Below are positions 34,010 to 57,472 of a DNA stretch of 64,000 bases, in pieces. The stretch's first letter is position 1. Each line of letters starts with the position of its first letter. A model generated the notes under the pieces. That model saw only the letters and a list, made by a program, of their open reading frames with translations, searched no databases and was not told where the DNA came from. This DNA comes from Chrysemys picta bellii (Eukaryota), in NCBI RefSeq assembly GCF_011386835.1, contig NC_088794.1, positions 8,680,001 to 8,744,000 of the forward strand, given 5' to 3'. The position numbers were made by a program, and so were the translations under genes.

Positions 34010-37000
34010 GGGTTGGTGGAGGGGACAGTAGTGGAGGGCACAGGGGTTCCCTCCTCTGTCATTATCCCATTGATATCCAAATCTTAGTCATTGTCTGTGT
34101 CCCCTGCTTTGCCACAGGCTTGCTTGAACTCGAGGACAGGGCTCCCGTGGTGTCTGAGGGGCTCATCGCACACGGGGCTGTGGGGATCATTCCCAGTGAG
34201 CAGCCCATCTGACCTCTGCTCCTGGATGTAGATGCTGAAGTCGTTGTCCTTGATCCAGCCCAGCAGATAGGCCAGGCCACAGTCACAGCGCCAGGGGTTC
34301 CCTGCTAGGTAGACATAGGCTAATATGTGCCCCTCGGGGAAGAAGCCGCTGGGCAGAGTGCGGAGCTGGTTCCCTGACAGCCTCAGTGTCTCCAGCTCCA
34401 GCCCAGCCAACAGCCCCCGCGGCAGCTCCTCCAGGACGTTATCAGACAGATCCAGGTCCTTCAACATGGCCAGGCCCTCAAAGGCCTCTTCTGGCAGCGT
34501 CCGCAGCTGGTTCCCCCGTAGATTCAGATCCTTCAGCTTCCCCACATCCCGGAAGGCCCCTGGCAGCAGCCCTGAAATGTTGTTGTGAGCCAGGACCAGG
34601 CGAGTGAGGGCAGGCAGGCCCTGCAGTGTGGGCAGCACCCCCAGGGCATTGTGGGACAGGACCAGCTCCTGCAGCAAGGGCAGGGGGGGCCCAGTGTGCA
34701 GCGCACCCAGTGCGTTGCCTGACAGGTCCAGCTCAGCCAGCTCAGGGAGGTGCTGGAAGGCGGCAGTGGAGACGGACGCCAGGCGGTTGGAGCTGAGCAG
34801 CAGGATGCTGGTGTTCCTGGGCAGGGCAAGTGGCACCACGCTGAGCCCCTTTCCGGAGCAGTTCACCTGCAGTCGGTCCTTGATCAGGTTCATCTTGGAT
34901 GGGCATGGCTCCCCTGTAGTGGAGGGCACAGGGGTGGTTGCGGGCAGGGTGGTGGAAGGGACAGTAGTGGAGGGCACAGGGGGTCCCTCCTCTGTCATTG
35001 TCCCATTGATATCCAAGTCTGTGTCCCTGCTTTGCCGCAGGCCTGCTGGAACTCGAGGACAGGGCTCCCGTGGTGTCTGAGGGGCTCATCGCACACGGGG
35101 CTGTGGGGATCATTCTCAGTCAGCAGCCCGTCTGGCCTCTGCTCCTGGATGTAGATGCTGAAGTCGTTGTCCTTGATCCAGCCTCGCAAATAGGCCAGGC
35201 CACAGTCACAGCGCCAGGGGTTCCCTGCCAGGAAGACGAAGGCAAACATGTGGCCCTCGGGGAAGAAGCCGCCGGGCAGAGTGCGGAGCTGGTTCCCTGA
35301 CAGCCTCAGTGTCTCCAGCTCCAGCCCAACCAACAGCCCCAGCGGCAGCTCCTCCAGGGCGTTATCAGACAGGTCCAGGTCCTTCAACATGGCCAGGCCC
35401 TCAAAGGCCTCTTCTGGCAGCGTCCGCAGCTGGTTCCCCCGTAGATTCAGATCCATCAGGTTCCCCACATCCCGGAAGGCCCCTGGCAGCAGCCCTGAAA
35501 TGTTGTTGTGAGCCAGGGCCAGGCGGGTGAGGGCAGGCAGCCCCTGCAGTGTGGGCAGCACCCCCAGGGCATTGTGGGACAGGACCAGCTCCTGCAGCAA
35601 GGGAAGGGGGGGCCCAGTGTGCAGCGCACCCAGTGCGTTGCCTGACAGGTCCAGCTCAGCCAGCTCAGGGAGGTGCTGGAAGGTGGCAGTGGAGACGGAC
35701 GCCAGGCGGTTGGAGCTGAGCAGCAGGATGCTGGTGTTCCTGGGCAGGGCAAGTGGCACCACGCTGAGCCCCTTTCCGGAGCAGTTCACCTGCAGTCGGT
35801 CCTTGATCAGGTTCATCTTGGATGGGCATGGCTCCCCTGTAGTGGAGGGCACAGGGGTGGTTGCGGGCAGGGTGGTGGAAGGGACAGTAGTGGAGGGCAC
35901 AGGGGGTCCCTCCTCTGTCATTGTCCCATTGATATCCAAGTCTGTGTCCCCTGCTTTGCCGCAGGCCTGCTGGAACTCGAGGACAGGGCTCCCGTGGTGT
36001 CTGAGGGGCTCATCGCACACGGGGCTGTGGGGATCATTCTCAGTCAGCAGCCCGTCTGGCCTCTGCTCCTGGATGTAGATGCTGAAGTCGTTGTCCTTGA
36101 TCCAGCCTCGCAAATAGGCCAGGCCACAGTCACAGCGCCAGGGGTTCCCTGCCAGGAAGACGAAGGCAAACATGTGGCCCTCGGGGAAGAAGCCGCCGGG
36201 CAGAGTGCGGAGCTGGTTCCCTGACAGCCTCAGTGTCTCCAGCTCCAGCCCAACCAACAGCCCCAGCGGCAGCTCCTCCAGGGCGTTATCAGACAGGTCC
36301 AGGTCCTTCAACATGGCCAGGCCCTCAAAGGCCTCTTCTGGCAGCGTCCGCAGCTGGTTCCCCCGTAGATTCAGATCCATCAGGTTCCCCACATCCCGGA
36401 AGGCCCCTGGCAGCAGCCCTGAAATGTTGTTGTGAGCCAGGGCCAGGCGGGTGAGGGCAGGCAGCCCCTGCAGTGTGGGCAGCACCCCCAGGGCATTGTG
36501 GGACAGGACCAGCTCCTGCAGCAAGGGCAGGGGGGGCCCAGTGTGCAGCGCACCCAGTGCGTTGCCTGACAGGTCCAGCTCAGCCAGCTCAGGGAGGTGC
36601 TGGAAGGCGGCAGTGGAGACGGACGCCAGGCGGTTGGAGCTGAGCAGCAGGATGCTGGTGTTCCTGGGCAGGGCAAGTGGCACCACGCTGAGCCCCTTTC
36701 CGGAGCAGTTCACCTGCAGTCGGTCCTTGATCAGGTTCATCTTGGATGGGCATGGCTCCCCTGTAGTGGAGGGCACAGGGGTGGTTGCGGGCAGGGTGGT
36801 GGAAGGGACAGTAGTGGAGGGCACAGGGGGTCCCTCCTCTGTCATTGTCCCATTGATATCCAAGTCTGTGTCCCCTGCTTTGCCGCAGGCCTGCTGGAAC
36901 TCGAGGACAGGGCTCCCGTGGTGTCTGAGGGGCTCATCGCACACGGGGCTGTGGGGATCATTCTCAGTCAGCAGCCCGTCTGGCCTCTGCTCCTGGATGT

Positions 37001-37685
37001 AGATGCTGAAGTCGTTGTCCTTGATCCAGCCTCGCAAATAGGCCAGGCCACAGTCACAGCGCCAGGGGTTCCCTGCCAGGAAGACGAAGGCAAACATGTG
37101 GCCCTCGGGGAAGAAGCCGCCGGGCAGAGTGCGGAGCTGGTTCCCTGACAGCCTCAGTGTCTCCAGCTCCAGCCCAACCAACAGCCCCAGCGGCAGCTCC
37201 TCCAGGGCGTTATCAGACAGGTCCAGGTCCTTCAACATGGCCAGGCCCTCAAAGGCCTCTTCTGGCAGCGTCCGCAGCTGGTTCCCCCGTAGATTCAGAT
37301 CCATCAGGTTCCCCACATCCCGGAAGGCCCCTGGCAGCAGCCCTGAAATGTTGTTGTGAGCCAGGGCCAGGCGGGTGAGGGCAGGCAGCCCCTGCAGTGC
37401 GGGCAGCACCCCCAGGGCATTGTGGGACAGGACCAGCTCCTGCAGCAAGGGAAGGGGGGGCCCAGTGTGCAGCGCACCCAGTGCGTTGCCTGACAGGTCC
37501 AGCTCAGCCAGCTCAGGGAGGTGCTGGAAGGCGGCAGTGGAGACGGACGCCAGGCGGTTGGAGCTGAGCAGCAGGATGCTGGTGTTCCTGGGCAGGGCAA
37601 GTGGCACCACGCTGAGCCCCTTTCCGGAACAGTTCACCTGCAGTCGGTCCTTGATCAGGTTCATCTCGGACGGGCATGGCTCCCC
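34010..37685 (-). repeat. Coding tandem repeat, 4 x 924 bp (308 codons); module starts 37685, 36761, 35837, 34914
   Basis: Antisense ORFs recur at exact 924-bp spacing (35248/36172/37096) and 923 bp for the last. Modules 1-3 differ at only a few SNVs; module 4 is more divergent. Confidence 0.95.
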
Positions 37686-37754
37686 CAGACCCACAGCGCC
37701 AGCCACAGAGAGCAGGGCCAGGAGGGCTAGGTGAGGTGAGGTGGGGCACAGCAT
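34084..37754 (-). CDS. GP1BA: GP1BA-like locus A: signal peptide plus 4 tandem GPIb-alpha ectodomains, no TM. Frame 1 (37754-34995) gives 919 aa; a 1-bp deletion at ~35025-35027 separates module 4, which ends at TAA 34086-34084
   Basis: ATG lies 3 nt after the splice acceptor ctcccctgcag, followed by a hydrophobic leader. Each module has LRRNT (EPCPS..VNCSG), LRRs, LRRCT (GNPWRCDC..YLRGWI) and GDTDLD, aligning motif-for-motif with human GPIb-alpha (NPWLCNC, GDTDLYDYY). TM, CC and tail are absent. Confidence 0.85.
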
Positions 37755-38094
37755 GGTCTGCAGGGGAGACAAGAGCATGCTCAGGACACAGACATCACAG
37801 GGCATGTCTACACTAACCAGCTCAGACTGCAACTGAGACTTATGACTCCCCAGTCTGGAGTGCTGGGGACAACTCCCGGTGGGATATCCCACAATGGTCC
37901 CATCTACACCAACACAGCTGGTGCTGCAACAGAGTTGGGTCCCCTGAGCAGATACTAGCTCTAATAACAAGGGCTCCCTAGCTCCCCAGTGCCCTCTGTC
38001 CCATCAGGCACCTGCACCCTGACCATGCTGGGGACCAGCTACACTAACCCTGCTGGTGCTGTAACAGTGTCAGGGAGCTGCCATTAGCACCACG

Positions 38095-38291
38095 TACAAG
38101 GAGTTGACTCCCCCACACCTCCAGGCTGGACTAAACTCAAAAGGTTTGGATCAATCCCTGTAGTTTCCCTTCCTCCCAAACCCAGAACTTCTGCTCCCTT
38201 ATAGCCACGGCAGCTGGTCCAGCCAGGAACCCCCCCGGTAATTGCCACATCCATTCTCCACCTGCCTGTATCCTCTGGCCTTGCTTCAACC
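38095..38291 (-). promoter_or_regulatory. Non-coding exon 1 / core promoter of locus A, truncated upstream
   Basis: GCTATAAGGG TATA-like box near 38200; donor CTT|GTACGT near 38097; homology to the B/C promoters stops at ~38291. Confidence 0.55.
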
Positions 38292-40023
38292 CATGGCTGG
38301 GTGATCAATTCATTTTATTCCACAACTGTCTTGAAATCAACGTCTCCATTTCTTGAAACATGTGACTTAGCTTGTGAGGCCTTTGGGGGCAGGGACTGCA
38401 TTTTTATTTAGTGTTTGTACAGCCCCTATCACAGCAAGGGCCTGGGCCATGCCTGGGGCTTCTCATAGTGCTGCTCCAATATAAATAATAATACTTACAA
38501 AAAACCACATTAACAGAACTTTATTTAGGTTCCAAAGTTGAGTTCTCAGGGTTAGGAAATGCTGGGTTGTACGAACAGCCTGAACTTCACCCTCTTTGTG
38601 TGCCGGATGAGGCAGGGGGTCCTGTGGAATAAATAGCACGTGATCATGTACCATAAATAAGATTGCACCATCGCGCCCACAGCTTGGGAACAGCCACCCA
38701 TCATGACTGCCTGGGCTCAGTCTGAGAGGAAAGTGTGCTCCCAGCTGGGTTAGGCCATGATTAAACTTTGTAATATGCACAAGCCAAATGAGGCCTGGGC
38801 TACCCACAGAGCTGCAGTAGTTTAACTAATGGTAAGACTCCCAGCTCAGACACTTCTCCAATCTTCCCCTGGAGTGCTGGCAGCAGCCCCTCTGAATCAT
38901 TTGATGCTACTACTACAGACCACCACCATGGGGCACAGAGGGGACAGAGTCCCTGTTGCAGAGCTGCTGCCCCAACTCCCAGCCCCCATGCTGGGCTGGA
39001 GTTGGGGGGTGGGAGGGTTGCTCTGGCTCTCCAGACCAGGGGTTGGTCTCACCCAGAGAGGAGCAAGGATAGACCAGGAACTAGCATCTCGGGACAGGGC
39101 CCCTGCACCCACAGTGCCACACTCAGTCTCCGAGCTCCTCCACCTACCTAACCGCAGGGATGTGCCAGGCTCTGCTCCGCGGTGAAAGGCTCCCTAGGAC
39201 CTCCTGAGAATCAGAGTCAATCCCCAAGGAGCTTTTGCAATGGAGGGCACCCAGTTCTGTTGCTGTGGCAGAAACTGTCTGTCCGGGCAGATTGTAATCA
39301 GCAGCTGAATGTGCTCCTCCCCCCTGCAGCCAGCCAGCAATAGGGAGGGGAATGTGGAAGTAAAGAGCAGCCCCCAGAAATGGAATGATAACAGGATGTT
39401 CCTGGCAGGAAGGGGAAGTCTAGTGCAGCAGTTCTCACAACAAAATTTTTGGTGGCATCAGAGTGCGGCCACCAGCTCTTGCTGCTGGCCGCACTGACAC
39501 TTTTCCCTAAAATTATTGATTTTTCCTAAAGTTAATAAAGTAATATGCACATACAGTATATACATCCAAATCATTGTAGTTTATTTATGTAAGGTTTGGG
39601 GTTTTTTTGCAGACTCAATAATAAAAATCATGCACAATTATCTCTATTCTTTACTGGACCTAACAGAATAGAAACACAAATAAGGTGCTTTGCATGTTCC
39701 TGTCTTTTTTATTATTGTTTCTTTAGCTTTTTTGGTAAAAGTGGTTGTCTGTATAACAATTTTGAAGTAAATTTAAAAATGCTTTGACATAATAGAAGTC
39801 CAAATAATAATGAAAAACATGTCTGGGTGGCTTGGGTCTGGGGAGGGGAGCATAGGTACGGTTGCGGCTGCAGCTGGCCCAGGGCTCCTCCGGGCAGGTG
39901 TGTGTGTGTGTGTGGCGGGGTGGTCTTGGGGCCTTGGCCAAATGCTCTGGCTGCCGGGGGGGCTGGGGAACGCAGGCAGAAGGGTTCGAGTCGGGGACTA
40001 GCCTCCCCAAAGGGGGGCTCCAC

Positions 40024-41631
40024 TAGGGTTACCATCCGTCCGTATTTCCCCGGACATGTCCGGCTTTTGCGTCTCTATATAGCCGTCCGGGAGGAATTGG
40101 TAACAAAGTTAAAATGTCCAGGGTTTTTTTCTCCCTCGCCTCCCTCCCTCCCTTCCATGCAGAGTGCGGCTGCTGATTGGGCAGCTGTGTCGATTGAGCC
40201 GCTCCCATTGGCCTCCAGCAGCCAGAGCCCTCCCCTGCTCCCCCCTCCCTCTGTCTGCAGCCCTGTGTAACACACAAACCGACCCACCGGGCAGCGTGTT
40301 TTGCCTACACATGGAGCCAGAATGGTAAGGGGAGTCCGGGGGAGGGGGCAGTCAGGGAGCGGGGGAGTGTTGGATGGGTCCCCGGCCTCCACCTGCCACC
40401 CCCCCTCTGCACGTCGTCCCGCCCGTGGACTCCCCCTCCCTTCCTGCCTCTCCCTTGCCTGCTTGTGCTGCCAGAGCCAGCAGCAACTGCTGTCTGCTGC
40501 CCCCGGGTCCTAGCATCCCCCATCCACTAATGGGAAGACAGGCTGCCCTTGCCCTGCCCTTCCACCCTATCCCTGAGCCTCTCCAACGCCCCAAACCCCT
40601 CAGCCCCAGCTCTCATCCCCCTGCACCCTAATCCTCTGCCCCAGCCCTGAGCCTCCTCCTGCATCATAAACCCCTCATCCCCAGCCCCAGCCCTCATCCC
40701 CCGCACCCTAATCCTCTGCTCCATCCCTGAGCCCCCTCCTGCATCATGAACCCCTCATCCCCAGCCCCAGCCCTCATCCCCCGCACCCTAATCCTCTGCC
40801 CCAGCCCTGAGCCTCCTCCTGCATCATAAACCCCTCATCCCCAGCCCTCATCCCCCGCACCCTAATCCTCTGCTCCATCCCTGAGCTCCCTCCTGCATCA
40901 TGAACCCCTCATCCCCAGCCCCAGCCCTCATCCCCCGCACCCTAATCCTCTGCCCCAGCCCTGAGCCTCCTCCTGCATCATAAACCCCACATCCCCAGCC
41001 CCAGCCCTCATCCCCCGCACCCTAATCCTCTGCTCCATCCCTGAGCCCCCTCCTGCATCATGAACCCCTCATCCTCAGCCCCACAGCCCTCACCCCTGCA
41101 TCCCCTCCTATCCCCAAACTCCCTCCCCCTTCCCACACATCCCCTTCTGCCCACAAACTCCCTCCCAAAGCCTGCACCCCCTCCATTTGCATCGCCTCTC
41201 ACCCCCAAACTCCATCCCAGAGCCTGCACCCCTCATCCCCTCCTGCACACCCACCCCCTGCCCCAGCCCGGAGCCTGCACCCAGCACCCAAACTCTATCC
41301 CAGAGCCTGCACCCTGCACCCCTCCTGCACCCTAATCCCCAGCCCAGGACCTGCGCCCCAGACCTCCTCCCCGCACCCAACCCCCCTCCCAGAGCCTTAG
41401 GCAGGTGGGGGGGGGGGTTCTGGGCACCACCAAAATTTCTACAACCCTGCCTCCCATGTGAGTGGATAAGAGTCGGGGCAGTCAGGGGACAAGAAGCAGG
41501 GGGGGGGGTTGGGGTTCTGAGGGGGGCAGTCAGGGGGTGGGAAGTGGGAGGGAGTGGATGGGGGGCGGGACTAGGGCGGGGCTTCCCCCCCCAGTGTCCT
41601 CTTTTTTGATTGTGGAAATATGGTAACCCTA
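40024..41631. mobile_element. hAT (Blackjack-like) non-autonomous element nested in 39426-42186
   Basis: TIR TAGGGTTACCAT / ATGGTAACCCTA; exact 8-bp TSD GGCTCCAC. Confidence 0.9.
40590..41090. repeat. C-rich minisatellite, unit ~70 bp, inside the nested hAT
   Basis: Repeated ccccagccccagccctcatcccccgcaccctaatcctctg(c/t)..ccctgagc..cctcctgcatcat(a/g)aacccctcat. Confidence 0.9.
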
Positions 41632-42522
41632 GGCTCCACCCGCTGCCCGTGCGCCCGCTGCTCACCTTCTCACCCCCGCCCACCGCTCGTCTCCTGCATC
41701 CATCCGCAGTCCCCCACCTGCTACTCATCTACTCTCACCCCCCCAACCTGCCGCTCGCCTCCTCACTCCCCTGCCACAGACACCCCCCTGCCTGCCACGA
41801 GAACTTCCGCTCGCTGGTGACTCACCGCTCACCTCCGCACTCCCCTGCTCGCAGCCAGACCTCCTCCCGCCTCCTCACCCTGCTGCTGGCTCGCCGCTCA
41901 CCTCCTTACTCCTCCGCCAGGCTCCCCCTGCCTGCCTCACCACTCACCCCCCCACCCACTGCTCACCTCGCTGCTCGCCTTCTCACCCCCTCCTTGCTGC
42001 CTCACCTTGTTCCTTAAGCACTGTATGCCCCACCTATGTGTCCCACTTGTGTCTCCAGAGAAGCAGCGCATGCAGGAGCAACAGAGAGGGAGGGAGGGAT
42101 GGGAGGGGCTGATGTTTGCACCCACTGCCCAGGAAACTGCTGTGGCTGCAGAGAAACCCCGTGGTGGCCGCATTTGAGAAACGGTGGTCTAGTGTGTCTA
42201 GACACGCTTCTGTAGGACTGATCCCCATCAGTAGCAGAAACTCCCCAGTCTGATCATCTAGCTGGGACCATTCTTGTGTCTCAGAATGATATAAGGTGGC
42301 AGCAGATCCTCTCCCTGGGATGGTTTGTGTCTCTGCTTCTGTCACACAGAGGGAGGACTTTTTTGTTTCTCCCGTTTCTCGTATTGACTCAAACTGCCTC
42401 ATGGCCACTTTTTAGCTCATTGTCCAGATGGAAAATGTTCTAAATTCTGATACTTTCTTTGTGCTTTTTTTCTGAGTAATAGTAGGGAGCTATTACATGG
42501 AGAGCCTAAATTCAAACACAAT

Positions 42523-42586
42523 TCCCACCATGTGGCGCCAAAAACCACCTCCCTTAAGGTGCTATGCTACCAACTGAGCTAGCCAC
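42523..42586 (-). pseudogene. tRNA-Lys(CTT)-like pseudogene (duplicate of 28886-28952)
   Basis: Reverse complement GGCTAGCTCAGTTGGTAGCATAGCACCTTAAGGGAGGTGG... Confidence 0.6.
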
Positions 42587-43428
42587 ACTACTCACTTATC
42601 AGCCTGTCAGTCAAAGGATGACATCTGACAATGGTTTGTGAGCACTCTCACTTTTGGTCAGTCTCAGGGCTGGGTTACTCCCAGACTCTGCTGTGATGGG
42701 GTCTTCGCTAATTCGTGCTGTGAGGTTTATCTTTGGGGCAATGTGTGTGACTCAAACTGCACTAAAGAGGGGAAAACGCTGGCCAGTTTCCCCAGTGTGG
42801 GGGATGTTACCAGTGACAGGCTGGGGTGTAGAGAATAGGGGCATAGTTTCTCATTAGGGGCTGAAACAGGGATATTTATTTTTCTTGATGGTGTTATTTA
42901 GAGGAAAGAGTGATTTTTTAGAAACAAGGTTAAAAAGATCACTGAACCTTCTTTGATCAGCCATAATAATTTACTGTCACCTTATTTTTGCCTCAGTAAG
43001 GAAAAAAAAACTGACTTTTTGGCCGGTTTTGTTCTCCCAACTGAAGTAGCAGAGTGAGCTGGAATAGCCGGCAGCTCCAGCTCAGGTTGCAGGGCTGTCA
43101 GCAGAGTGGGGTGTGTGGAAGAGCCCAGCATCTGAATGTGTCTGACCCTCCCTGAGATTCACTAACTTGAGACCCGGGGGAGGTGGCCCTAGCTCTGGGC
43201 TAAAGCTCAACAGAGCAATGTTTATATAGAGGGACATTTTAGGTCTATTTCATAAAATGCTGAGTCACCGCTAGGCATGAGCACAAAGTACTGTCTTGGA
43301 GGAAGAAGGGAACATTCCCACATGAATGGAAGGCCAGCAGAGAGGTGTGGACCATTTGTGCCCTGATCTCAGGATGTAAAGAAACAACCAGCCCCCAATG
43401 ACAGGAATCAAAACAAGCATTTTCAGAA

Positions 43429-43498
43429 GAGGGCAGGGATTGAAACCCAGCAGCTTCTTACAGACAAAACAGGAGTTCTGCCACTGAGCTATATTCCC
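43429..43498 (-). pseudogene. Degenerate tRNA-like sequence (duplicate of 29845-29914)
   Basis: Reverse complement GGGAATATAGCTCAGTGGCAGA...CTGGGTTTCAATCCCTGCCCTC. Confidence 0.55.
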
Positions 43499-44334
43499 AC
43501 ATTGCCTGAAGTGCTCAGATCCTTAAAACAAGAGCGAAGCAGCCACCTGTTCACCCTGTGTCAGAGCTGGGATTTTGAAATCACTCCTCCATCCGTAGAT
43601 GATGCATGAGCAGGCTGCCATAACATTATGTACCCGTTCATCGCATCAGCCCTTTTACTAGCAGTGCTGGGCCAGGCACAATGTCCCCTGAGGGAAATAC
43701 CCCCTGAATTCCCTTTCAGACGCCCTAGAAATGTGTTTAAATTTAAGTTTGCCTATTGGAGAAATAAATGAGTCTCTCTGTGAACAGAGGAGAGTGAGTC
43801 CATCCATTTCCGTAATCAATGTGCAGACTAGCAGCCTCTTCTTTCCAATTCCTGGTGTTCTGGTGTCGTCATGTAGCTATTTCATGTCACTCCTTTTTTT
43901 ATTAAAAAATGGTGTTTTTCACAGAAAACATTATTTTCCTTTTAGAAACACAGAAGCAGTTTATTTAATCGACAAAGGTAAAGCAAATTCCCGCTTCTGA
44001 TGCCACAATTCTGGAGAGAGGTGGGAACACATTCACAGAGTGGCACAACTTTCAGCATTACTGACAGAGCCCAGGGGGGTGCATCACTCTCAGAGAGGGC
44101 AGTGCTTTCCTTTTTCTCTGAGGCAAAAAGGGGTAGTTTGGGGTTGGGGCAGTTTAAACATAGACAAAGATTTTTTTTAGGGGATTTCTCCATCTTCCCC
44201 AAGAATAATCCACAGCAAAATAGATAAGAAACAGCCTTGCGCTATGTGGAATAAAAAAAATTCCAATTCCATTCCTTAGTGGGAGTTCGTAACTGCTTAA
44301 AAAAATAAAGGAGAGGCATATCCTAATGGTGGTG

Positions 44335-44402
44335 GTGTTGGGGGGCGTCAAACTCACAGGCCTGAGAGTAAAAGTCTCATGTGCTACCAGTTGAGCTACA
44401 GC
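44335..44402 (-). pseudogene. tRNA-Lys-like pseudogene (duplicate of 30686-30754)
   Basis: Reverse complement TAGCTCAACTGGTAGCACATGAGACTTTTACTCTCAGGCCTGTGAGTTTGACGCCCCC. Confidence 0.65.
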
Positions 44403-45454
44403 ACATATCCCAATCGCAAAATATTGATCTGAAAAAACTCATTCTAATGCTAAAGGACTATGGTTCAAACTGGACAGAGGGAATCAGTTCTCCTCAGCAT
44501 TTGGCCAGTTTTCCCCTTCTCAAATTAGCCCAGAACACTCTTGGAGTTTTATAAATTAATTTGTTTTTCAAATTGTGTCAACTCTTTAGTAAATCTGGTT
44601 CAGCCTCCAGGCCATTCACAGACGTTTTACTGGGCCAACTGTGTAATTCATCTTCTTAGCCCCTGGCTGCTCCTTTTGCTCCCTGCATGCCTGGGGAGAG
44701 TCACTATTATCAATGGTTCATTCCAGGAGACTGGAGTGAAATCAGTTCTCAGCCTGGATGCTGTTCTGAGTCCTTCACCCTCATTCCTTAGGTTATGGTG
44801 CCACCAGGTGGTCATTTCATTTCCCTCCTGGATTTTACACAGAAACACAATTTTCTGTGCACAGATCAATGGACAGCATATTTCAGATGGCTGCCCTCGG
44901 AACTGGTGGAGGGATGTTGGTGGGAGGTGAGTTGTGTCTCCATGACAGGGACATCTTTGTCCTTTCCAGCACCCTCATCCCCCTTTACTCTGCAGGCCAT
45001 GACAGGGGGCAGGGCAGGGCTGTAAAAAACCCATCCAAACCCAGGTCCCTTTATAACATGCCCAGAAACGATGGCTTCTAATCAGCCCTCAGCTCAGTTA
45101 TCAGCATATGGGAAAGAATGGTCTGAAATTGGTAAGATCTTGTTATTTTTACAATATATTCCTTGCATGCTCTGGAGCATTAACACCGCAGGATTGACTT
45201 CTCCATGCTACTTGGGGGGGGGGGGGGGGGGCAGAGATCTGACAAAATATTGGCTCTACTGATATTTGAATATTTAAATCTTTCTCTGTTTTGGAGGGGT
45301 GAGGGGTAGATTTAAATGAATGTAGTCTCTCCAAAAGAAGAAATGTTTCTGTGGAAATTACTAAAATTTTAAAGGAAAGGAGTGAAACAAAATGGCCACA
45401 CATTGCATCAGAACCTAAGAAATGAAAAACAACACACATCTTTATACACCAAAC

Positions 45455-46170
45455 TTGTTGACATGCAACTCAACTCAACAATGCGCATCATCACAGGAAC
45501 TCTCCAACCAACTCATCTTCCATGGCTTCCAGTTCTCAGCCCTCCTACATCAGGAGGGCGACTGCAGCTGGCAAGCTGCTTGGGAAGGTAAATGCTAACC
45601 CAAGCTTGCCCTTGCTCAAAGACCTTTTTGGCTCACCAGCCACATGTCTTTCATCACAACACCCACTGTGGTCAAGGCTGCCATGTAGGGTTGCCAACCT
45701 GCCAGAATTGCCCTAGAGTCTCCAGGAATTAAAGATCAATCTTTAATTAAAGATTATATCATGTGCTAAAAACTCCAGAAATATGTCCAACCAATATTGG
45801 CAACTCTACTGCCATGCCGGGATGTGACAGTGGAGTCCTTGTGGGGGGAAGAGTAGTGCTTAACACGAATCACCAATCAGTTCCTCATCACAGACCCTAC
45901 TGCTCGCCTGCCTGGCTTTGACTTGCCACGTCATCATTGGGTCCTTCTTAACCAATTCCGGGCTGGGCAAGGCTTATGTGCAGCCAACCAGCACTGTTGG
46001 GGTCTTCGAGACAACCCAAGCTGCAGCTGTGGCGCAGATCAAATAATGATACACGTTGTTGAGGAATGCCCACTTATCAAATTCAGCAGTGAGCTCCGAG
46101 AGCTCCACTTGGCCACTGAAAATGTTATTGCTTGGTTTGGAGAACACACAAATGCTAAATAAATAAATAA
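45455..46170 (+). mobile_element. Vingi/Ingi-type LINE 3' end (duplicate of 32245-32836)
   Basis: Same peptide and (TAAA)n tail; interrupted by a MITE. Confidence 0.75.
45686..45808. mobile_element. hAT MITE (123 bp)
   Basis: TIR TAGGGTTGCCAA / TTGGCAACTCTA; exact 8-bp TSD CTGCCATG. Confidence 0.9.
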
Positions 46171-46657
46171 CTGTTGACTCTGCAAAGTGATTTAACTTGA
46201 CTCCTTTACATTTAAAGACATTTAATTCTATACTAGGCAAACGATAAGAACAAAGCAATTTCAGTTATTGTGACATTGTGAATCTTATACCAATTGTAAA
46301 AATGTATTCCAAACTTGAGCTTCCTGTTATTTAAGGCCAGGTTTCCAAGTTCAGGTCCAAATGTTAGCAGTTTATTCCTTTGAAAGATGGGGGATGTTGG
46401 TCATCCGAGAATGTCACTGTGGGAACAAGACCGGGAAATATTATCTACAGTCATCCATCAGGATCACTCAGCTTGCTACCAACCACTATAATAGCGTAAA
46501 CTGAGCAAGATGGACTAATGTATTGTCCATCCATTTAGGAGAGTCGTGACATTTCCCTTATGTGAATATGATTTTTGACCTCAATGAGCTGGGAAACATT
46601 AAATACTAGACTACATTTAAAACAAGAGCAATTGAAAAAAATAAGGAAAATGTATCA

Positions 46658-46729
46658 TCTCTGCTTTGTTTCAAACCGGGGACCTGTCAGATGTCAGTCC
46701 AAGATGTTAATCACTACATTAGAGAAACC
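46658..46729 (-). pseudogene. tRNA-Val-like pseudogene (duplicate of 33340-33411)
   Basis: Reverse complement GTTTCTCTAATGTAGTGATTAACATCTTGGACTGACATCTGACAGGTCCCCGGTTTGAAAC. Confidence 0.7.
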
Positions 46730-47792
46730 ACCTGTGGGTTTATGTCCCTTGTGGTATATAAAATAATCAAGTCTCATTCTCCCATAGAATTGGAGAAAAC
46801 TATGTTCTAAAATTTGAATGAAATCAGATTATACAATATACTTCCCAGGTCTCCATTTTTATTTCATTCCAGATAAACTTTTGTTGCCAATTCTTTGATT
46901 TGATCTCCCCTTCTCATATTACAAGCTCTTTTTTCCTTCAAAGGAGTTGTGTGGTTACTGGGACTGGCTGCTAAACTAACCGGATCCCTTCTTGTGTCAT
47001 TGGGACAGATTTGGCATGTGACCCTACACTATAGCAATGCCCCTTAAAAACCTGGACTGTCATTTGCTCTAGCTCTGAAACTGAAAGACAGGAAAAACAA
47101 ACAAAAACTGTAGACTCCTCACATCTCCACAAAACCATCTGTGATTTCTCTTTAAGACTCTCAAGGAGCTCTCCCATATGAAATGGGGGTTTGGATTATA
47201 TATTGTGTGTGTGTTAGTTACAGAGGAAGTAGAAATTAGAAAGTGCTCTAGCCGCAGTTTAATGAATGAAGTGGGAAATCAGACACTTATATAGGAAATG
47301 GAACCAGAACTTGAAGCCATTAAACAATCATACAACTATCCACTCTTCTCTTTCCTATCAGATGCTGCTGCAAATCAGCTGCAAGGTGGGGGAACTGGCC
47401 ATCTTAGCGTGCTGGGGACTGGGAGATGGGGCATTTCCCCTCTAAGGGGCACTGACCTTGGCTCCCATCTGGCCCCAGGGCAGGAGACTTGCTGGCTCAG
47501 GGCAGCGGGGAGTGGGACATGCAGCCTCTCTTTTCTAGTGGGTGCAGCTTTGATCTAGCCTCAGGGTAGGGGATTGGCAGGCTGAGGGGAGTGGGGAGCA
47601 GGACATAGGGCCTTTCCTTTCTAGGAGGCGCCAGCTCCAGTCCAGCCCCAGAGTGGGAAATTGGCTGGCTAAGGGCGGTAGGAGATTAGGCATTTCCCCT
47701 CTAGAGGGCACTGGCTTATGTAGCCCCAGGGGAGGGGATCTAGCCAGCCCAGAGTGGTGGGGATTGGGATATGGGGTGTTTTCGCTCTAGAG

Positions 47793-49179: not shown

Positions 49180-49861
49180 CTCTAGAGCATGCTGTCTCTG
49201 AGCCACCTACAAGGCAGGGGAACTGGCTGGCCCAGACAGGTCAGGGAATAGGATATGGGGCCTTTCCCATCTGGGGGAGCATGCAAAACTGAGCATCATT
49301 ATTCACCTCCAGCAAAGACCACAAGCAGCCTGGTGTTTTTGAACTGTGACCTAGCTGCATCCAGGGAAGGTCTTTATTCTGTGATTAGCCAATGGAACTA
49401 CCTGCCACAGGATTCAAAGTAGGATCAACATTTCTGTGGATTATAAGAACAGCCAGAGACCTGATACAGAGAGGAGGAAATATCGACAAGGCTCTGCCAG
49501 GGCACAAGCCAGCCCTGAACTGCCTGGTTTTAAGGGGAAACTGCCCCTCTGGACAGTTATTCCAGATCTGGCCTCTGCAGCAGGGGTGTGCATGGGGGAG
49601 CTCTACAGGGTTAGAAGAGCCCATTGGTCTGAGGCAGGAGGGGCATCTGGGAGCCAGAATATATGGGTTCTACATATATTAAGGGACCCTCCCAGCTACT
49701 GCAGCAGTGGGAGGAATCTTGTCCCCGGTGCACAGTGGGTGAGATCACAGCAACAGAACTGGAATTAGAACCCAGGCGTCCTGGCGAGCAGTACCCCCTG
49801 CCTTAGCCCCCAGGACCCTGCTCCCCAGCCCCAACAATAGAACCCAGGTGTCCTGCCCCCC

Positions 49862-51745
49862 TTAGAGGGTGGTGGTTGCATATTTCACCCTGACAGCCCT
49901 GATAGCTGCTTCCCCCCTGTCTAGGCTGTAGGCGGAGGGAGCCCGCCAGGGGCCCAGCCCCCCCACACTCAGCAGCCTCCTGGTAACACGTCGGAAGGAG
50001 GGCACAGGGGGGTCGCGGTGGATCCGCAGCTCCTTGGTGGTGCGGAAGGTTGGGGGCTCTATGGGGCTCCTGAAGCTGCTAAGATGCATCATGGGGGGTG
50101 CTGCCCCCTCCCCCTTTCTCAGCAGCTGGTACCGCACCAGCCGTGCCCCCGGGGGACTCCTCAGAGCTGGGCGATACCAGCCCAGATATACCCAGCCCAT
50201 CCAGCCCAGGAGAGCCAGCATGGGCAGCAGCAGCAGCAGCAAGGAGGCCAGGTAAAGCGCCAGGTGCAGCAGGCAGCAATGGGCTAGCACCCAGTGGCCC
50301 CACTGTGGGCCCGCCCTGCCCTGCTGATGACCAATGGGCATCGCTGGGGGTGGGGTGGGGCATGTGCAGAGGCGGGGAGCCCCCATCGGAGGGGGTGGCT
50401 GGTGGCAGGGGGTGATGTGGAGAGGGCTGGTATGGAAGGGAGGCGAGGGGATAAGGGAGGTGGTGGGAGTCATGGGGGTGCTGGGGAGCCATGGGGGTGC
50501 AAGTTCTGGGGCAGTAGTGGGAGGCATGGTGGTGGTTGGGGGCAAGGTGGTGGAGGGAGAAGTAGTGGGAGGCACAGGGGTGGTTGGGTGTAGAGTGGTG
50601 GAGGGGGCAGTAGTGGGAGGCACAGGAGTGGTTGGGGGCTGGTTGGTGGAGGGGGCAATAGTGGGGGTCACAGGAGTGGTTGGGGGCTGGGTGGTGGAGG
50701 GGGCAATAGTGGGGGGCACAGGAGTGGTTGCGGGCAGGGTGGTGGAGAAGGCAATAGTGGGGGGTACAGGGTTAGTTGGGGGCAAGGTGGTGGAGGGGAC
50801 AGTAGCAGAAGGCACTGGGGTTCCCTCCTCTGTCATTGTCCCATTGATATCCAAGTATGTGTCCCCTGCTTTGCTGCAGGCCTGCTGGAACTCGAGGACA
50901 GGGCTCCCGTGGTGTCTGAGGGGCTCATCGCACACGGGGCTCTGGGGATCATTCTCAGTCAGCAGCTCGTCTGACCTCTGCTCCTGGATGTAGATGCTGA
51001 ACTCATTCTCCTCAATCCAGCCCCGCAGATAGGCCAGGCCACAGTCACAGCGCCAGGGGTTCCCTGCTAGGTAGACATAGTCTAATGTGTGCCCCTCGGG
51101 GAAGAAGCCGCTGGGCAGAGTGCGGAGCTGGTTCCCTGACAGCCTCAGTGTCTCCAGCTTCAGCCCAGCCAACAGCCCCCGCGGCAGCTCCTCCAGGGCG
51201 TTATCAGACAGGTCCAGGTCCTTCAACATGGCCACGCCCTCAAAGGCCTCTTCTGGCAGCGTCCGCAGCTGGTTCCCCCGTAGATTCAGCTCCGTCAGGT
51301 TCCCCACATCCCGGAAGGCCCCTGGCAGCAGCCCTGAAATGTTGTTGTGAGCCAGGACCAGGCGGGTGAGGGCAGGCAGGCCCTGCAGTGTGGGCAGCAC
51401 CCCCAGGGCATTGTGGGACAGGACCAGCTCCTGCAGCAAGGGCAGGGGGGGCCCAGTGTGCAGCGCACCCAGTGCATTGCCTGACAGGTCCAGCTCAGCC
51501 AGCTCCGGGAGGTGCTGGAAGGCGGCAGTGGAGACGGACGCCAGGCGGTTGGAGCTGAGCAGCAGGATGCTGGTGTTCCTGGGCAGGGCAAGTGGCACCA
51601 CGCTGAGCCCCTTTCCGGAGCAGTTCACCTGCAGTCGGTCCTTGATCAGGTTCATCTCGGACGGGCATGGCTCCCCTGGACCCACAGCGCCAGCCACAGA
51701 GAGCAGGGCCAGGAGGGCTAGGTGAGGTGAGATGGGGCACAGCAT
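49862..51745 (-). CDS. GP1BA: Platelet glycoprotein Ib alpha-like, locus B, intact, 627 aa
   Basis: Single coding exon with ATG just after the acceptor. Signal peptide, LRRNT, LRRs, LRRCT, Pro/Thr mucin stalk, juxtamembrane CC (AHCCLLHLALY vs human FCCLLPLGFY), TM, PTFR motif and C-terminal ...SLDRGEAAIRAVRVKYATTTL (human ..[22 protein letters not shown]). AATAAA on the - strand near 49375. Confidence 0.93.
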   Translation of the reverse strand: MLCPISPHLALLALLSVAGAVGPGEPCPSEMNLIKDRLQVNCSGKGLSVVPLALPRNTSILLLSSNRLASVSTAAFQHLPELAELDLSGNALGALHTGPPLPLLQELVLSHNALGVLPTLQGLPALTRLVLAHNNISGLLPGAFRDVGNLTELNLRGNQLRTLPEEAFEGVAMLKDLDLSDNALEELPRGLLAGLKLETLRLSGNQLRTLPSGFFPEGHTLDYVYLAGNPWRCDCGLAYLRGWIEENEFSIYIQEQRSDELLTENDPQSPVCDEPLRHHGSPVLEFQQACSKAGDTYLDINGTMTEEGTPVPSATVPSTTLPPTNPVPPTIAFSTTLPATTPVPPTIAPSTTQPPTTPVTPTIAPSTNQPPTTPVPPTTAPSTTLHPTTPVPPTTSPSTTLPPTTTMPPTTAPELAPPWLPSTPMTPTTSLIPSPPFHTSPLHITPCHQPPPPMGAPRLCTCPTPPPAMPIGHQQGRAGPQWGHWVLAHCCLLHLALYLASLLLLLLPMLALLGWMGWVYLGWYRPALRSPPGARLVRYQLLRKGEGAAPPMMHLSSFRSPIEPPTFRTTKELRIHRDPPVPSFRRVTRRLLSVGGLGPWRAPSAYSLDRGEAAIRAVRVKYATTTL

Positions 51746-52084
51746 GGTCTGCACGGGAGACAAGAGGATGCTCAGGACACAGACATCACAGGGCATGTCT
51801 ACACTAACCAGCTCAGACTGCAACTGAGACTTGTGACTCCCCAGTCTGGAGTGCTGGGGACAACTCCCGGTGGGATATCCCACAATGGTCCCATCTAGAC
51901 CAACCCAGCTGGTGCTGCAACAGAGTTGGGTCCCCTGAGCAGATACTAGCTCTAATAACAAGGGCTCCCTAACCCCCCAGTGCCCTCTGTCCCATCAGGC
52001 ACCTGCACCCTGACCACACTGGGGACCAGCTACACTAACCCTGCTGGTGCTGTAACAGTGTCAGGGAGCTGCCATTAGCACCAT

Positions 52085-52300: not shown

Positions 52301-52374
52301 CCAGTGGCATCTGCGTGAGGGGAGCACGATTAAAGCATCTGGCATTTAGTGCCTTCAGCACCAGGTGAGGGATC

Positions 52375-55597: not shown

Positions 55598-57472
55598 CTA
55601 GAGGGTGGTGGTTGCATATTTCACCCTGACCGCCCCGATAGCTGCTTCCCCCCTGTCTAGGCTGTAGGCGGAGGGAGCCCGCCAGGGGCCCAGCCCCCCC
55701 ACACTCAGCAGCCTCCTGGTAACACGTCGGAAGGAGGGCACAGGGGGGTCGCGGTGGATCCGCAGCTCCTTGGTGGTGCGGAAGGTTGGGGGCTCTATGG
55801 GGCTCCTGAAGCTGCTAAGATGCATCATGGGGGGTGCTGCCCCCTCCCCCTTTCTCAGCAGCTGGTACCGCACCAGCCGTGCCCCCGGGGGACTCCTCAG
55901 AGCTGGGCGATACCAGCCCAGATATACCCAGCCCATCCAACCCAGGAGAGCCAGCATGGGCAGCAGCAGCAGCAGCAAGGAGGCCAGGTAAAGCGCCAGG
56001 TGCAGCAGGCAGCAATGGGCTAGCACCCAGTGGCCCCACTGTGAGCCCGCCCTGCCCTGCTGACGCCCAGCCACGGGCATCGCTGGGGGTGGGGTGGGGC
56101 ATGTGCAGAGGCGGGGAGCCCCCATCGGAGGGGGTGGCTGGTGGCAGGGGGTGATGTGGAGAGGGCTGGTATGGAAGGGAGGCGAGGGGATAAGGGAGGT
56201 GGTGGGAGTCATGGGGGTGCTGGGGAGCCGTGCGGGTGCTGGGGATGCAGGTTCTGGAGCAGTAGTGGGGGGCAGGGTGGTGGCAGGGACAGTAGTGGGG
56301 GGCACGGGAGTAGTTGGGGGCAGGGTGGTGGGGGGCACAGGGGTGGTTGGGGGCAGGGTGGTGGAAGGGGCAGTGGTGGGGAGTTTGGGGCTGGTTGGGG
56401 GCAGGGTGGTGCAGGGGGCAGTAGTTGGGGGCACAGGGGTGGTTGGGGGCAGGGTGGTGGAGGGGGCAGTAGTGGGGGGCCCAGGGGTGGTTGGGGGCAG
56501 AGTGGTGGAGGGGACAGTAGTGGAGGGCACAGGGGTTCCCTCCTCTGTCATTGTCCCATCGATATCCAAATCTTCATCATTGTCTGTGTCCCCTGCTTTG
56601 CCACAGGCCTGCTTGAACTCGAGGACAGGGCTCCCGTGATGTCTGAGGGGCTCATCGCACACGGGGCTCTGGGGATCATTCTCAGTCAGCAGCCCGTCTG
56701 GGCTCTGCTCCTGGATGTAGATGCTGAAGTCGTTGTCCTTGATCCAGCCTCGCAAATAGGCCAGGCCACAGTCACAGCGCCAGGGGTTCCCTGCCAGGAA
56801 GACGAAGGCAAACATGTGGCCCTCGGGGAAGAAGCCGCCGGGCAGAGTGCGGAGCTGGTTCCCTGACAGCCTCAGTGTCTCCAGCTCCAGCCCAACCAAC
56901 AGCCCCAGCGGCAGCTCCTCCAGGGCGTTATCAGACAGGTCCAGGTCCTTCAACATGGCCAGGCCCTCAAAGGCCTCTTCTGGCAGCGTCCGCAGCTGGT
57001 TCCCCCGTAGATTCAGATCCATCAGGTTCCCCACATCCCGGAAGGCCCCTGGCAGCAGCCCTGAAATGTTGTTGTGAGCCAGGGCCAGGCGGGTGAGGGC
57101 AGGCAGGCCCTGCAGTGTGGGCAGCACCCCCAGGGCATTGTGGGACAGGACCAGCTCCTGCAGCAAGGGCAGGGGGGGCCCAGTGTGCAGCACCCCCAGG
57201 GCATTGTGGGACAGGTCCAGCTCAGCCAGCTCCGGGAGGTGCTGGAAGGTGGCAGTAGAGACGGACGCCAGGCGGTTGGAGCTGAGCAGCAGGATGCTGG
57301 TGTTCCTGGGCAGGGCAAGTGGCACCACGCTGAGCCCCTGTCCGGAGCAGTTCACCTGCAGTCGGTCCTTGATCAGGTTCATCTCGGACGGGCATGGCTC
57401 CCCTGGACCCACAGCGCCAGCCACAGAGAGCAGGGCCAGGAGGGCTAGGTGAGGTGAGGTGGGGCACAGCAT
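55598..57472 (-). CDS. GP1BA: Platelet glycoprotein Ib alpha-like, locus C, intact, 624 aa
   Basis: Same architecture as locus B with an uninterrupted ORF; TM and tail are nearly identical to B. Confidence 0.93.
   Translation of the reverse strand: MLCPTSPHLALLALLSVAGAVGPGEPCPSEMNLIKDRLQVNCSGQGLSVVPLALPRNTSILLLSSNRLASVSTATFQHLPELAELDLSHNALGVLHTGPPLPLLQELVLSHNALGVLPTLQGLPALTRLALAHNNISGLLPGAFRDVGNLMDLNLRGNQLRTLPEEAFEGLAMLKDLDLSDNALEELPLGLLVGLELETLRLSGNQLRTLPGGFFPEGHMFAFVFLAGNPWRCDCGLAYLRGWIKDNDFSIYIQEQSPDGLLTENDPQSPVCDEPLRHHGSPVLEFKQACGKAGDTDNDEDLDIDGTMTEEGTPVPSTTVPSTTLPPTTPGPPTTAPSTTLPPTTPVPPTTAPCTTLPPTSPKLPTTAPSTTLPPTTPVPPTTLPPTTPVPPTTVPATTLPPTTAPEPASPAPARLPSTPMTPTTSLIPSPPFHTSPLHITPCHQPPPPMGAPRLCTCPTPPPAMPVAGRQQGRAGSQWGHWVLAHCCLLHLALYLASLLLLLLPMLALLGWMGWVYLGWYRPALRSPPGARLVRYQLLRKGEGAAPPMMHLSSFRSPIEPPTFRTTKELRIHRDPPVPSFRRVTRRLLSVGGLGPWRAPSAYSLDRGEAAIGAVRVKYATTTL

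Follow-up and report, generated by a model that had tools for sequence, protein, structure and literature searches.

Tandem GPIb-alpha ectodomains without a membrane anchor in a pond turtle: a candidate secreted multivalent form of an old GP1BA paralog

GPIb-alpha is treated as a membrane receptor with a single ectodomain, and the soluble form of that ectodomain, glycocalicin, is produced by shedding. What, then, is a gene in which several complete GPIb-alpha ectodomains stand in line behind one signal peptide? Such a gene, here called gene A, lies in the window, by which we mean the whole 64-kb stretch of Chrysemys DNA that was analyzed and that holds 0 N runs. As described in a first-pass annotation, it comprises four ectodomain modules (924 nt) and a single signal peptide on the minus strand at 34084-37757, the four direct copies being spaced by 923, 924, and 924 nt. 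Tandem Repeats Finder, with its period limit of 500, is blind to this 924-nt repeat; repeat finding and our own alignment were used. Modules 1 to 3 are open, again as annotated: a minus-strand ORF at 34995..37970 gives 919 aa from its ATG and ends in ...ACGKAGTQTWISMGQ and a stop. Position 37757, given earlier as the 5' limit, is the first base of exon 2 (AG/ACCATG) and not the start codon; the ATG is at 37754-37752. The parts of gene A are as follows.

34995..37754, minus strand: ORF as assembled, 919 aa plus stop, with the signal peptide, modules 1-3, and a frameshifted tail (TQTWISMGQ, then stop)
37686..37754, minus strand: predicted signal peptide, MLCPTSPHLALLALLSVAGAVGL (from the translation; hydropathy peak at residues 1-27; cleavage site placed by eye)
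36762..37685, minus strand: module 1, with LRRNT, LRRs, LRRCT, and a Pro/Thr linker of ~25 aa
35838..36761, minus strand: module 2, from the alignment
34915..35837, minus strand: module 3, 923 nt, with CCC for CCCC at 35025-35027 shifting the frame in the assembly
34087..34914, minus strand: module 4, terminal and older, ~3% diverged from modules 1-3, untranslated as assembled
34084..34086, minus strand: TAA, where paralog C (see below) has GAA
33943..34083, minus strand: remnant of the ancestral C terminus of the anchor-less paralog, ...EEGTPVPSTTVPSTNPISHHPEPANLPPWGWNEAVAP, then TAG at 33945-33943, with the old deletion junction at ~34012
33545..33550, minus strand: AATAAA polyadenylation signal (the X28 contig ends at 33533)

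The first three modules are 99.5 to 99.8% identical to one another. In the module alignment, modules 2 and 3 differ by 2 mismatches and 1 indel, and module 1 differs from either at ~5 sites, the signal-peptide/linker end not counted; module 4 differs from the others by 27 to 29 mismatches. The stalk is reduced to the Pro/Thr linkers of ~25 aa, with no transmembrane segment and no tail. A 19-residue Kyte-Doolittle scan of the ORF found no hydrophobic segment after the signal peptide, the peak mean being 1.78 at the N terminus, compared with 2.59 for the transmembrane segment of the neighboring paralog C.

Each module (query residues 7-286) aligns in one stretch with residues 5-287 of human GPIb-alpha (E value, 3e-50), which is the only full-length single-stretch match to a module among solved structures. 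The six cysteines per module align with the human vnC, npwlCnC, qCd, and gC positions of the LRRNT and LRRCT, and the acidic region after the LRRCT is devoid of the tyrosines of the human thrombin-binding stretch. Gene A thus shares with the GPIb-alpha family the N-terminal domain, the conserved cysteines, the GP1BA locus, and a leader intron followed by a single coding exon. Lacking mucin stalk, transmembrane helix, and cytoplasmic tail, which its paralogs B and C possess, it is a member of the GP1BA family by descent and not a receptor of the GPIb-IX-V type. These paralogs are located 12 kb (B) and 18 kb (C) from gene A.

49862..51745, minus strand: paralog B, intact GP1BA, 627 aa, with mucin stalk, transmembrane segment, and tail
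55598..57472, minus strand: paralog C, intact GP1BA, 624 aa, with its own leader exon at 58258-58287

Paralog B carries 8 private nonsynonymous changes and 0 synonymous ones. Paralog C is transcribed (contig from run X11), and over 272 residues of ectodomain it shows 8 differences from modules 1-3 (97% identity). A search of the 2.37-Gb genome found no close copies of the module outside the window. Since two intact membrane GP1BA genes adjoin gene A, it is an added paralog rather than a remodeled receptor.

The kinship to GPIb-alpha is masked by the names in RefSeq, where gene A is modeled as "LOW QUALITY: slit homolog 1-like" (XP_023968991.2, 1227 aa) and both emydid models carry the LOW QUALITY tag. 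Slit has four, and CHADL two, tandem LRRNT-LRR-LRRCT cassettes, and both are secreted; gene A likewise consists of complete cassettes in tandem. It is not their ortholog, however, as no EGF, laminin-G, or cystine-knot domain was found in it, its Pfam matches being LRR families and LRRNT only. The modules are recent copies of GPIb-alpha, and the slit-like and chondroadherin-like names are artefacts of automatic naming. The existence of such models for Chrysemys and Malaclemys also makes the earlier statement that no such architecture is known too strong, although a literature search found no paper on them.

Is the loss of the anchor a recent accident of this gene? The first-pass annotation had inferred a ~3-kb deletion, and gene A indeed misses ~3.1 kb plus ~0.38 kb relative to paralog B, with a junction at ~34012. 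The deletion is ancient, however, and neither recent nor private to gene A: the same junction and tail occur in anchor-less paralogs of Chelonia (P0123), Macrochelys (P0124), Caretta (P0164), Mauremys (copy 2), and Malaclemys, and the DNA at the junction is colinear among the turtle anchor-less paralogs. Those of sea, snapping, and geoemydid turtles are ~345 aa long, and Macrochelys carries two copies with a tail of the gene A type. In at least four turtle families the frame is open, and its stop position and leader exon agree between them. The leader segment and its GTAAGT donor are conserved 5' of the short paralogs in Chelonia, Macrochelys, Mauremys, and Malaclemys, and the anchor-less paralog is followed downstream by a SCAN zinc-finger gene in Mauremys, Macrochelys, and Malaclemys and likewise in the window. 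By deletion junction, C-terminal tail, private leader exon with donor, and SCAN zinc-finger neighbor, the ~345-aa paralogs (Chelonia mydas XP_043405389.1, Macrochelys, Caretta, and Eretmochelys) are orthologous to gene A. On these comparisons, this anchor-less turtle paralog is old, and its lack of stalk, transmembrane segment, and tail is ancestral. The difference is that the ~345-aa paralogs have one ectodomain, compared with three or four in the emydid gene, which leaves the ancestral tail untranslated.

Module repetition itself was seen in pond turtles only (Chrysemys and Malaclemys). The Malaclemys gene (L016) is a true 922-aa ORF of three modules with the 924-nt period and the same PVPSTTGEPCPSK junction as gene A; its ancestral tail was lost via a 4-nt deletion, and its last module is orthologous to module 4 of gene A. 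We also considered the Mauremys models named "slit homolog 2-like" and "chondroadherin-like" (913 to 1446 aa), which likewise place several anchor-less ectodomain units beside the SCAN zinc-finger gene, and rejected them as the same architecture. Their units are whole exon copies ~1.9 kb apart, each with its own upstream region and signal peptide, which thus falls inside the models; they are multimodular only as predicted splicing, and no canonical donor was found at the modeled boundary.

Is gene A expressed? Evidence for transcription comes from assembled Logan contigs, whose depth does not allow expression to be ranked, the RNA nature of the runs being a guess. In these RNA-like runs, the transcript proposed for checking by the first-pass annotation was found, i.e., a spliced exon 1-exon 2 contig together with contigs across module junctions, and it gives the following structure.

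38499..38574, minus strand: leader exon 1, 3' end exact, at least 76 nt, with an upstream in-frame ATG at 38510-38508 (MWFFT-)
37758..38498, minus strand: 5' leader intron, 741 nt, GT-AG, with donor GTAAGT and acceptor ...cctgcAG
33533..37757, minus strand: exon 2, the sole coding and terminal exon, from colinear contigs, 3' end approximate
27582..28147, minus strand: second copy of the leader segment, 86%, GTAAGT kept, ~0.6 kb upstream of the SCAN zinc-finger ORF

In the X11 contig, a 76-letter segment whose last base is 38499 continues directly at 37757. Because 30 letters of the leader exon match only 38499-38528, this splice is specific to gene A, which uses its own conserved leader exon and not that of GP1BA. 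Such a private leader exon predicts that gene A is expressed differently from B and C. The acceptor lies 3 nt before the ATG, in agreement with the claim that the coding sequence occupies a single terminal exon, and the RefSeq model P0152 begins with MWFFT and has the same exon structure. Contig depth 5' of the leader region was nil. Further contigs are colinear with exon 2 (X11, 33406-34155; X28, 33533-33881 and 33894-34097), and two of 888 and 899 nt, from X11 and X28, span a module junction. The TAA and the 3' junction are crossed by contigs with 0 mismatches, and the AATAAA noted near 33545 is present at 33550-33545, 12 nt short of the X28 contig boundary at 33533. Gene A is hence transcribed, spliced, and colinear past the 3' junction toward the AATAAA, and spliced transcript occurs in runs from two studies.

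Both sequence changes reported earlier at the 3' end are present in the assembly: module 3 lacks one C (plus-strand CCC at 35025-35027, compared with CCCC in the three other modules), and a TAA occupies 34086-34084, where paralog C has GAA. Read as assembled, the three-module protein ends 9 residues past the third LRRCT. The tail of an older Chrysemys model, MTKIWISMGQ and a stop, had raised the idea that the TAA is shared, which we rejected, since in the shifted frame Thr is specified by ACT as well as by ACG, and the Malaclemys DNA reads GAA. It is possible, if on balance unlikely, that the assembly misstates a real gene here, i.e., that the deletion at 35025-35027 is a homopolymer error or an allele and four modules run on to the TAA (1222 to 1227 aa), or that haplotypes vary. 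The site is a C/G homopolymer, position 35025 has no covering contig, and the Chrysemys models from different assembly versions hold two (P0157), three (P0002), and four (P0152) modules; P0002, as its cluster members show, belongs to the species of the window and derives from an older assembly. On the other hand, the Malaclemys gene and the older Chrysemys model both end in ...WISMGQ and a stop after the LRRCT, with a different deletion, so that a three-module, tail-less product recurs. Contigs cannot directly count near-identical modules, and depth per assembled k-mer multiplicity was used instead. In the DNA run X1, depth fits four modules plus B and C (17.5 to 19.6 per assembled copy in repeated parts, 18.8 to 24.9 in unique flanks), and the junction contig has ~3x unique depth, fitting three junctions, while that in run X5 is compatible with two as well as three. 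The X1 result also bears on whether a short gene with one module was expanded into a tandem during assembly. Modules that are 99.5 to 99.8% identical are a type of repeat that assemblers may miscount. We nevertheless consider such an expansion very improbable, as the junction between stalk stub and mature N terminus, as well as the 3' junction, is spanned by contigs from four runs under two organism labels, and the 924-nt period recurs in Malaclemys with diverged modules.

A different concern is that gene A might be transcribed and yet functionless, an unprocessed pseudogene in decay whose frame is open through recent amplification and conversion from B and C and whose leader exon is fortuitous. 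Module 4 is disabled twice, by the frameshift and by the TAA, and with the ancestral tail untranslated this could be decay in progress; the tail is lost in Malaclemys as well, and both emydid models carry the low-quality tag of RefSeq. Moreover, modules 1-3 are nearly identical and close to paralog C, meaning that the open frame is young, and a dead copy could owe its open frame to gene conversion from functional B and C. Nor do substitution rates settle the matter. Between the window and the Malaclemys modules, dN/dS is 0.44 to 0.58, and across the GP1BA family, for long versus short paralogs between species, it is 0.4 to 1.1. Within a species, paralogs resemble one another more than orthologs do across species, which points to concerted evolution, making the long-versus-short values uninformative and the module comparisons nonindependent; a dN/dS of ~0.5 is in any case not below the family range. 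Against a pseudogene, anchor-less paralogs are open in those four or more families with stop position and leader exon retained, and the Malaclemys modules are 1.6 to 3% apart and still form a clean 922-aa frame. Both disabling events in gene A fall 3' of a complete LRRCT and remove the tail alone, the private changes of module 4 are mainly synonymous (5 synonymous versus 3 nonsynonymous; P = 0.03), and the spliced transcript comes from the runs of two studies. Taken together, we hold it doubtful that gene A is dead.

Gene A is instead probably the emydid form of the old anchor-less turtle GP1BA paralog, with a predicted product that would act as a secreted, multivalent competitor on the VWF axis. 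In the history that we propose, a receptor gene was duplicated, and two deletions would have cost the copy its transmembrane segment and tail, along with the proximal 3' untranslated region and the greater part of the mucin stalk. The paralog would then have gained its own leader exon, a second copy of which lies upstream of the neighboring SCAN zinc-finger gene. In emydids, a 924-nt unit running from the mature N terminus to the first ~25 stalk residues would have been multiplied in frame within the coding exon, so that the mRNA encodes one signal peptide and three complete ligand-binding domains joined by short Pro/Thr linkers, with a fourth domain should the 1-nt deletion prove to be an error or allelic. 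The modules would be turned over by unequal crossing-over and by gene conversion involving the membrane paralogs, and the binding surfaces would thereby stay near those of the receptor (8 of 272 residues differ from paralog C). This anatomy, together with the spliced transcript, makes gene A a credible secreted multivalent LRR protein. The product may be N- and O-glycosylated and may compete for, or cross-link, the ligands of the thrombocyte receptor, most likely the VWF A1 domain; A1 binding is predicted from one observation, namely that modules 1-3 and the ectodomain of paralog C are 97% identical.

Such a protein would be a counterpart of glycocalicin that is encoded in the genome and has enhanced avidity. 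It shares with glycocalicin and its gene the complete N-terminal domain, the GP1BA cluster, the leader intron with a single coding exon, and a predicted soluble product. It differs in that solubility is encoded rather than achieved by shedding, the ectodomain is present three to four times, and the leader exon is its own; the filamin- and 14-3-3-binding tail, the transmembrane segment, and the acidic-stretch tyrosines of GP1BA are absent. A more distant parallel is found in lamprey VLRs, in which the LRRCT is considered closest to the one in GPIb-alpha. VLRB is a secreted multivalent LRR binder, as predicted for gene A, but it achieves valency by disulfide-linked oligomers and diversity by somatic means, whereas gene A uses tandem germline modules with no sign of somatic diversification.

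It is tempting to speculate, although we rate this as rather unlikely, that hard-shelled turtles have kept a germline-encoded soluble GPIb-alpha for perhaps more than 100 million years and that pond turtles made it tri- or tetravalent, matched by conversion to the thrombocyte receptor, as a tuner of VWF adhesion or a decoy. If so, it could be an anti-thrombotic brake during long dives and cold, anoxic hibernation, or a high-avidity decoy for pathogens and toxins that target GPIb-alpha, and in either case a natural multivalent receptor trap made from a hemostatic receptor. If the protein is made, a turtle lineage would have devoted a distinct gene to soluble GPIb-alpha, equipped it with a leader exon of its own, and then multiplied the binding domain in frame. 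This would amount to a natural experiment in avidity engineering on the VWF-GPIb axis, bearing on how thrombosis is avoided in sluggish, cold, anoxic blood and on the design of GPIb/VWF antagonists. The locus also illustrates clearly how a receptor and its soluble paralog can evolve in concert, with turnover of modules between them.

The locus also bears on a comparative study from 2015, which described turtle and archosaur GPIb-alpha as being without a cytoplasmic domain (PMC4486697). Because full-length genes with transmembrane segment and tail adjoin the anchor-less one, it was likely the anchor-less paralog that was scored in turtles.

We favor, with moderate confidence, a reading of gene A, the anchor-less GPIb-alpha gene of the window, as a live gene for a secreted protein with three, perhaps four, GPIb-alpha binding domains (modules m1 to m4), an emydid elaboration of an old anchor-less paralog. 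The features concerned are as follows.

22839-26997 (22839-23534 and 26224-26997), minus strand: SCAN-domain C2H2 zinc-finger gene (SCAN-ZNF), downstream of gene A
33.5-38.6 kb, minus strand: gene A, the only gene on that strand there
34084..35016, minus strand: ORF by translation, reading m4 in another frame
34995..37970, minus strand: open ORF by translation
49862-51745, minus strand, as gene A: CDS of paralog B, intact, 627 aa
55598-57472, minus strand, as gene A: CDS of paralog C, intact, 624 aa

A repeat search of the window recovered four direct module copies spaced 923, 924, and 924 nt, which Tandem Repeats Finder missed because their period exceeds 500. In an alignment of the four units, two mismatches and one indel separate m2 from m3; m1, apart from its signal-peptide end, departs from both at only a few sites; and m4 carries 27 to 29 mismatches (about 3%) relative to the others. 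Module junctions coincide with the border between signal peptide and mature protein. The first-pass annotation had described one signal peptide followed by in-frame 308-aa modules, with m1 to m3 open, and translation bears this out: from the ATG at 37754, the product comprises 919 aa, that is, a signal peptide and three 308-aa modules, ending in ACGKAGTQTWISMGQ*. The coordinates of that annotation all hold, except that exon 2 starts at 37757 and the ATG follows three bases on. The proposed defects of m4 are likewise present in the assembled sequence, where the window is free of N runs: as assembled, the plus strand reads CCC at 35025-35027 against CCCC in the other three modules, which breaks the frame, and m4 stops at a TAA (34086-34084) where paralog C has GAA. 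None of the contigs examined covers 35025.

Each module aligns in one stretch with residues 5-287 of human GPIb-alpha, the crystallised N-terminal domain (E 3e-50), with the cysteines of LRRNT and LRRCT in place. The IGF acid-labile subunit reached a higher total score, but one summed from many partial LRR stretches. Pfam assigned only LRR families and LRRNT to the gene A product, and no hydrophobic segment was found in the 919 aa beyond the signal peptide: mean hydropathy over 19 residues peaks at the N-terminus (1.78). Hydropathy and the human alignment thus agree with the earlier description of complete LRRNT-LRR-LRRCT modules lacking a membrane anchor. The product has 11 N-glycosylation sequons and six cysteines per module; the tyrosines found in the sulfotyrosine region of human GPIb-alpha are absent from the acidic stretch that follows the LRRCT. 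Near-identity to paralog C, together with what is known of glycocalicin, leads us to predict that the protein would compete with or cross-link ligands of the membrane receptor, VWF A1 foremost.

The loss of the anchor is old. The segment 34120-33780 spans the m4 end, the junction of stalk stub and 3' flank, and the flank itself; single loci of Chelonia mydas, Macrochelys suwanniensis (which has two copies), and Mauremys reevesii match it colinearly at 88-92%. Among the long, membrane-anchored paralogs, namely those of the window, of Macrochelys, and of Eretmochelys, 1.6-3.1 kb separates the two sides of the junction, and a second gap of ~0.38 kb follows. Annotated 342-347-aa proteins from Chelonia, Caretta, and Macrochelys end just as the read-through of m4 does, with …VPSTNPISHHPEPANLPPWGWNEAVAP and then a stop, and this tail recurs in Mauremys copy 2 and a Malaclemys model; the short, anchor-less genes of Mauremys, Macrochelys, and Malaclemys adjoin SCAN-ZNF, as in the window. 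Taken together, junction, tail, and neighbor indicate that the anchor-less GP1BA paralog existed before sea turtles, snapping turtles, and testudinoids diverged. The ~3-kb deletion previously placed at ~34010 has its junction near 34012; it is ancient and common to the short paralogs of other turtles, in several lineages of which the frame has stayed open. For turtles, this paralog probably explains the 2015 report that turtle and archosaur GPIb-alpha lack the cytoplasmic domain (PMC4486697). Macrochelys has two separate 342-aa anchor-less copies (L014 18222-19250 and L013 10001-11029), ~23 kb apart and downstream of the long gene, so short-gene number varies among turtles through whole-gene duplication too. 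In a chimeric MetaClust model (P0127, 488 aa), a sea-turtle-like short GPIb-alpha ectodomain (…TEEGTP) continues into the neighbor's SCAN domain, suggesting that a cryptic donor within the stalk stub permits read-through splicing. Chelonoidis P0122 and Pangshura P0159 likewise carry alternative tails following …EEG(T/N)PVP.

Gene A also has a leader exon of its own. Upstream, similarity to the long paralogs extends only to 38291, and beyond this point matches are confined to short paralogs of other turtles. All sequencing runs were consulted as Logan contigs, with RNA status guessed by the tool; we accept X11 as RNA since it holds two different exon-exon joints and no contig at 38076-38400, while X28, which has no contig there and no joint, is less well supported. 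In one X11 contig, 76 letters that run up to 38499 are followed directly by 37757, and 30 of the leader letters occur once in the window (38499-38528). With GTAAGT after 38499 and the acceptor …cctgcAG|ACCATG, this defines a 741-nt GT-AG intron. Chelonia, Macrochelys, and Mauremys preserve the end of the leader exon and its donor almost unchanged, and the Malaclemys gene has a matching donor upstream of it. A second X11 contig joins exon 2 to 58258-58287, paralog C's own exon 1. The ~590-bp leader segment with GTAAGT occurs twice, at 38402-38950 upstream of gene A and at 27582-28147, ~0.6 kb upstream of the SCAN-ZNF ORF. We infer that the two leaders are duplicates, and a duplicated promoter and leader may serve both genes; the short gene thus need not share thrombocyte-specific GP1BA regulation.

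Contigs of 888 and 899 nt (X11, X28) cross the module junction at 36764. Contigs 33670-34155 and 33894-34097 cross the TAA and the old junction with zero mismatches, and an X28 contig begins at 33533, 12 nt beyond the AATAAA, which is found at 33550-33545, as annotated. That the tandem modules are purely an assembly expansion is very unlikely. In the DNA runs X1 and X5, which carry two organism labels, contigs span a module junction as well as the 3' junction. Depth per copy, taken as contig depth divided by 31-mer multiplicity in the assembled window, is 17.5-19.6 for repeated parts and 18.8-24.9 for unique flanks in X1, fitting four modules plus B and C; in X5, two or three module junctions both fit. 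Module number may differ between haplotypes. Independent support for module multiplication comes from Malaclemys terrapin (L016), with a true 922-aa ORF of three modules, 924-nt spacing, and the same PVPSTTGEPCPSK junction as gene A. This ORF ends in …GDTMTKIWISMGQ* because of a 4-nt deletion, the GAA being intact; two different deletions within ~10 nt thus bring Chrysemys and Malaclemys into the same frame and to the same TGA, just past a complete LRRCT. Position 36465 is G in X1, X5, and X11 contigs, C in m1 to m3 of the assembly, and G at the equivalent site of m4; X28 contigs differ from the assembly at 36476 and 36705. We regard these as signs of module-level polymorphism between individuals.

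The main rival holds that gene A is a transcribed duplicate in decay, its open frame preserved through recent amplification and gene conversion, which we consider rather unlikely. Relative to m1 to m3, 8 of 272 residues are different in paralog C, 21-23 in B, and 15-17 in m4; across turtles, within-species paralogs are closer than between-species orthologs. Most informative sites of m4 are shared with the terminal Malaclemys module, and m4 appears pieced together from m-like, B-like, and C-like tracts, a mosaic that it has in common with Malaclemys; this points to the terminal module as an old lineage. The modules upstream of it are recent replacements that were amplified anew. Across turtles, dN/dS is 0.4-1.1 in long and short genes alike and so cannot separate them; between window and Malaclemys modules it is 0.44-0.58. 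Changes private to m4 (5 synonymous, 3 non-synonymous; p 0.03 versus neutrality) and to the B ectodomain (0 and 8), both small and partly non-independent numbers, bear on selection, the latter hinting at positive selection on the B binding domain.

In a protein search, multi-module models appeared in turtles only. XP_023968991.2 (Chrysemys picta bellii, 1227 aa; N-terminus MWFFT, from the leader-exon ATG, and C-terminus GDTDND) is gene A read through the frameshift, named "LOW QUALITY PROTEIN: slit homolog 1 protein-like"; older-version models of 938 aa (three modules) and 584 aa (two) are more divergent in sequence. The RefSeq names of such models are wrong. The first-pass annotation knew of no such architecture, and our literature searches indeed found no paper on tandem GPIb-alpha ectodomains or turtle GP1BA paralogs, but RefSeq models exist, misnamed and flagged low quality. 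Unlike in gene A, each unit of the Mauremys models is a copy of the entire exon, so that signal peptides occur internally, and no canonical donor was seen at the modelled boundary. In Mauremys reevesii L001, the mucin region and the transmembrane/tail ORF of the long copy lie in different frames (9824-12223, 10818-11990), reflecting either a real frameshift or an assembly error, and RefSeq splices its ectodomain to two short copies downstream.

B and C, in tandem 5.7 kb apart, both have a mucin stalk, a transmembrane helix (hydropathy 2.59), and a cytoplasmic tail. Searching the entire 2.37-Gb genome in six frames gave no further close copy, the next LRR match being 38% identical. Compared with itself, the window shows segmental duplication (27582-38291 with 38402-52293; 47203-53407 with 53404-59145). 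G-rich tandem-repetitive DNA downstream of the paralogs (47878-49185, 54116-54923, 41108-42017) makes the long-gene 3' flanks larger than in Macrochelys and yields long spurious ORFs (…GAGCGMGLRAVGWDAGGV…) on both strands. An inverted ~2-kb repeat pair (15105-17066 versus 20490-18557, 93%) and a ~450-bp element with three occurrences (12911-13356, 15164-15607, 20430-19983) are probably transposable-element copies; reverse-transcriptase-like ORFs lie near these repeats (10768-11446, 15394-15963).
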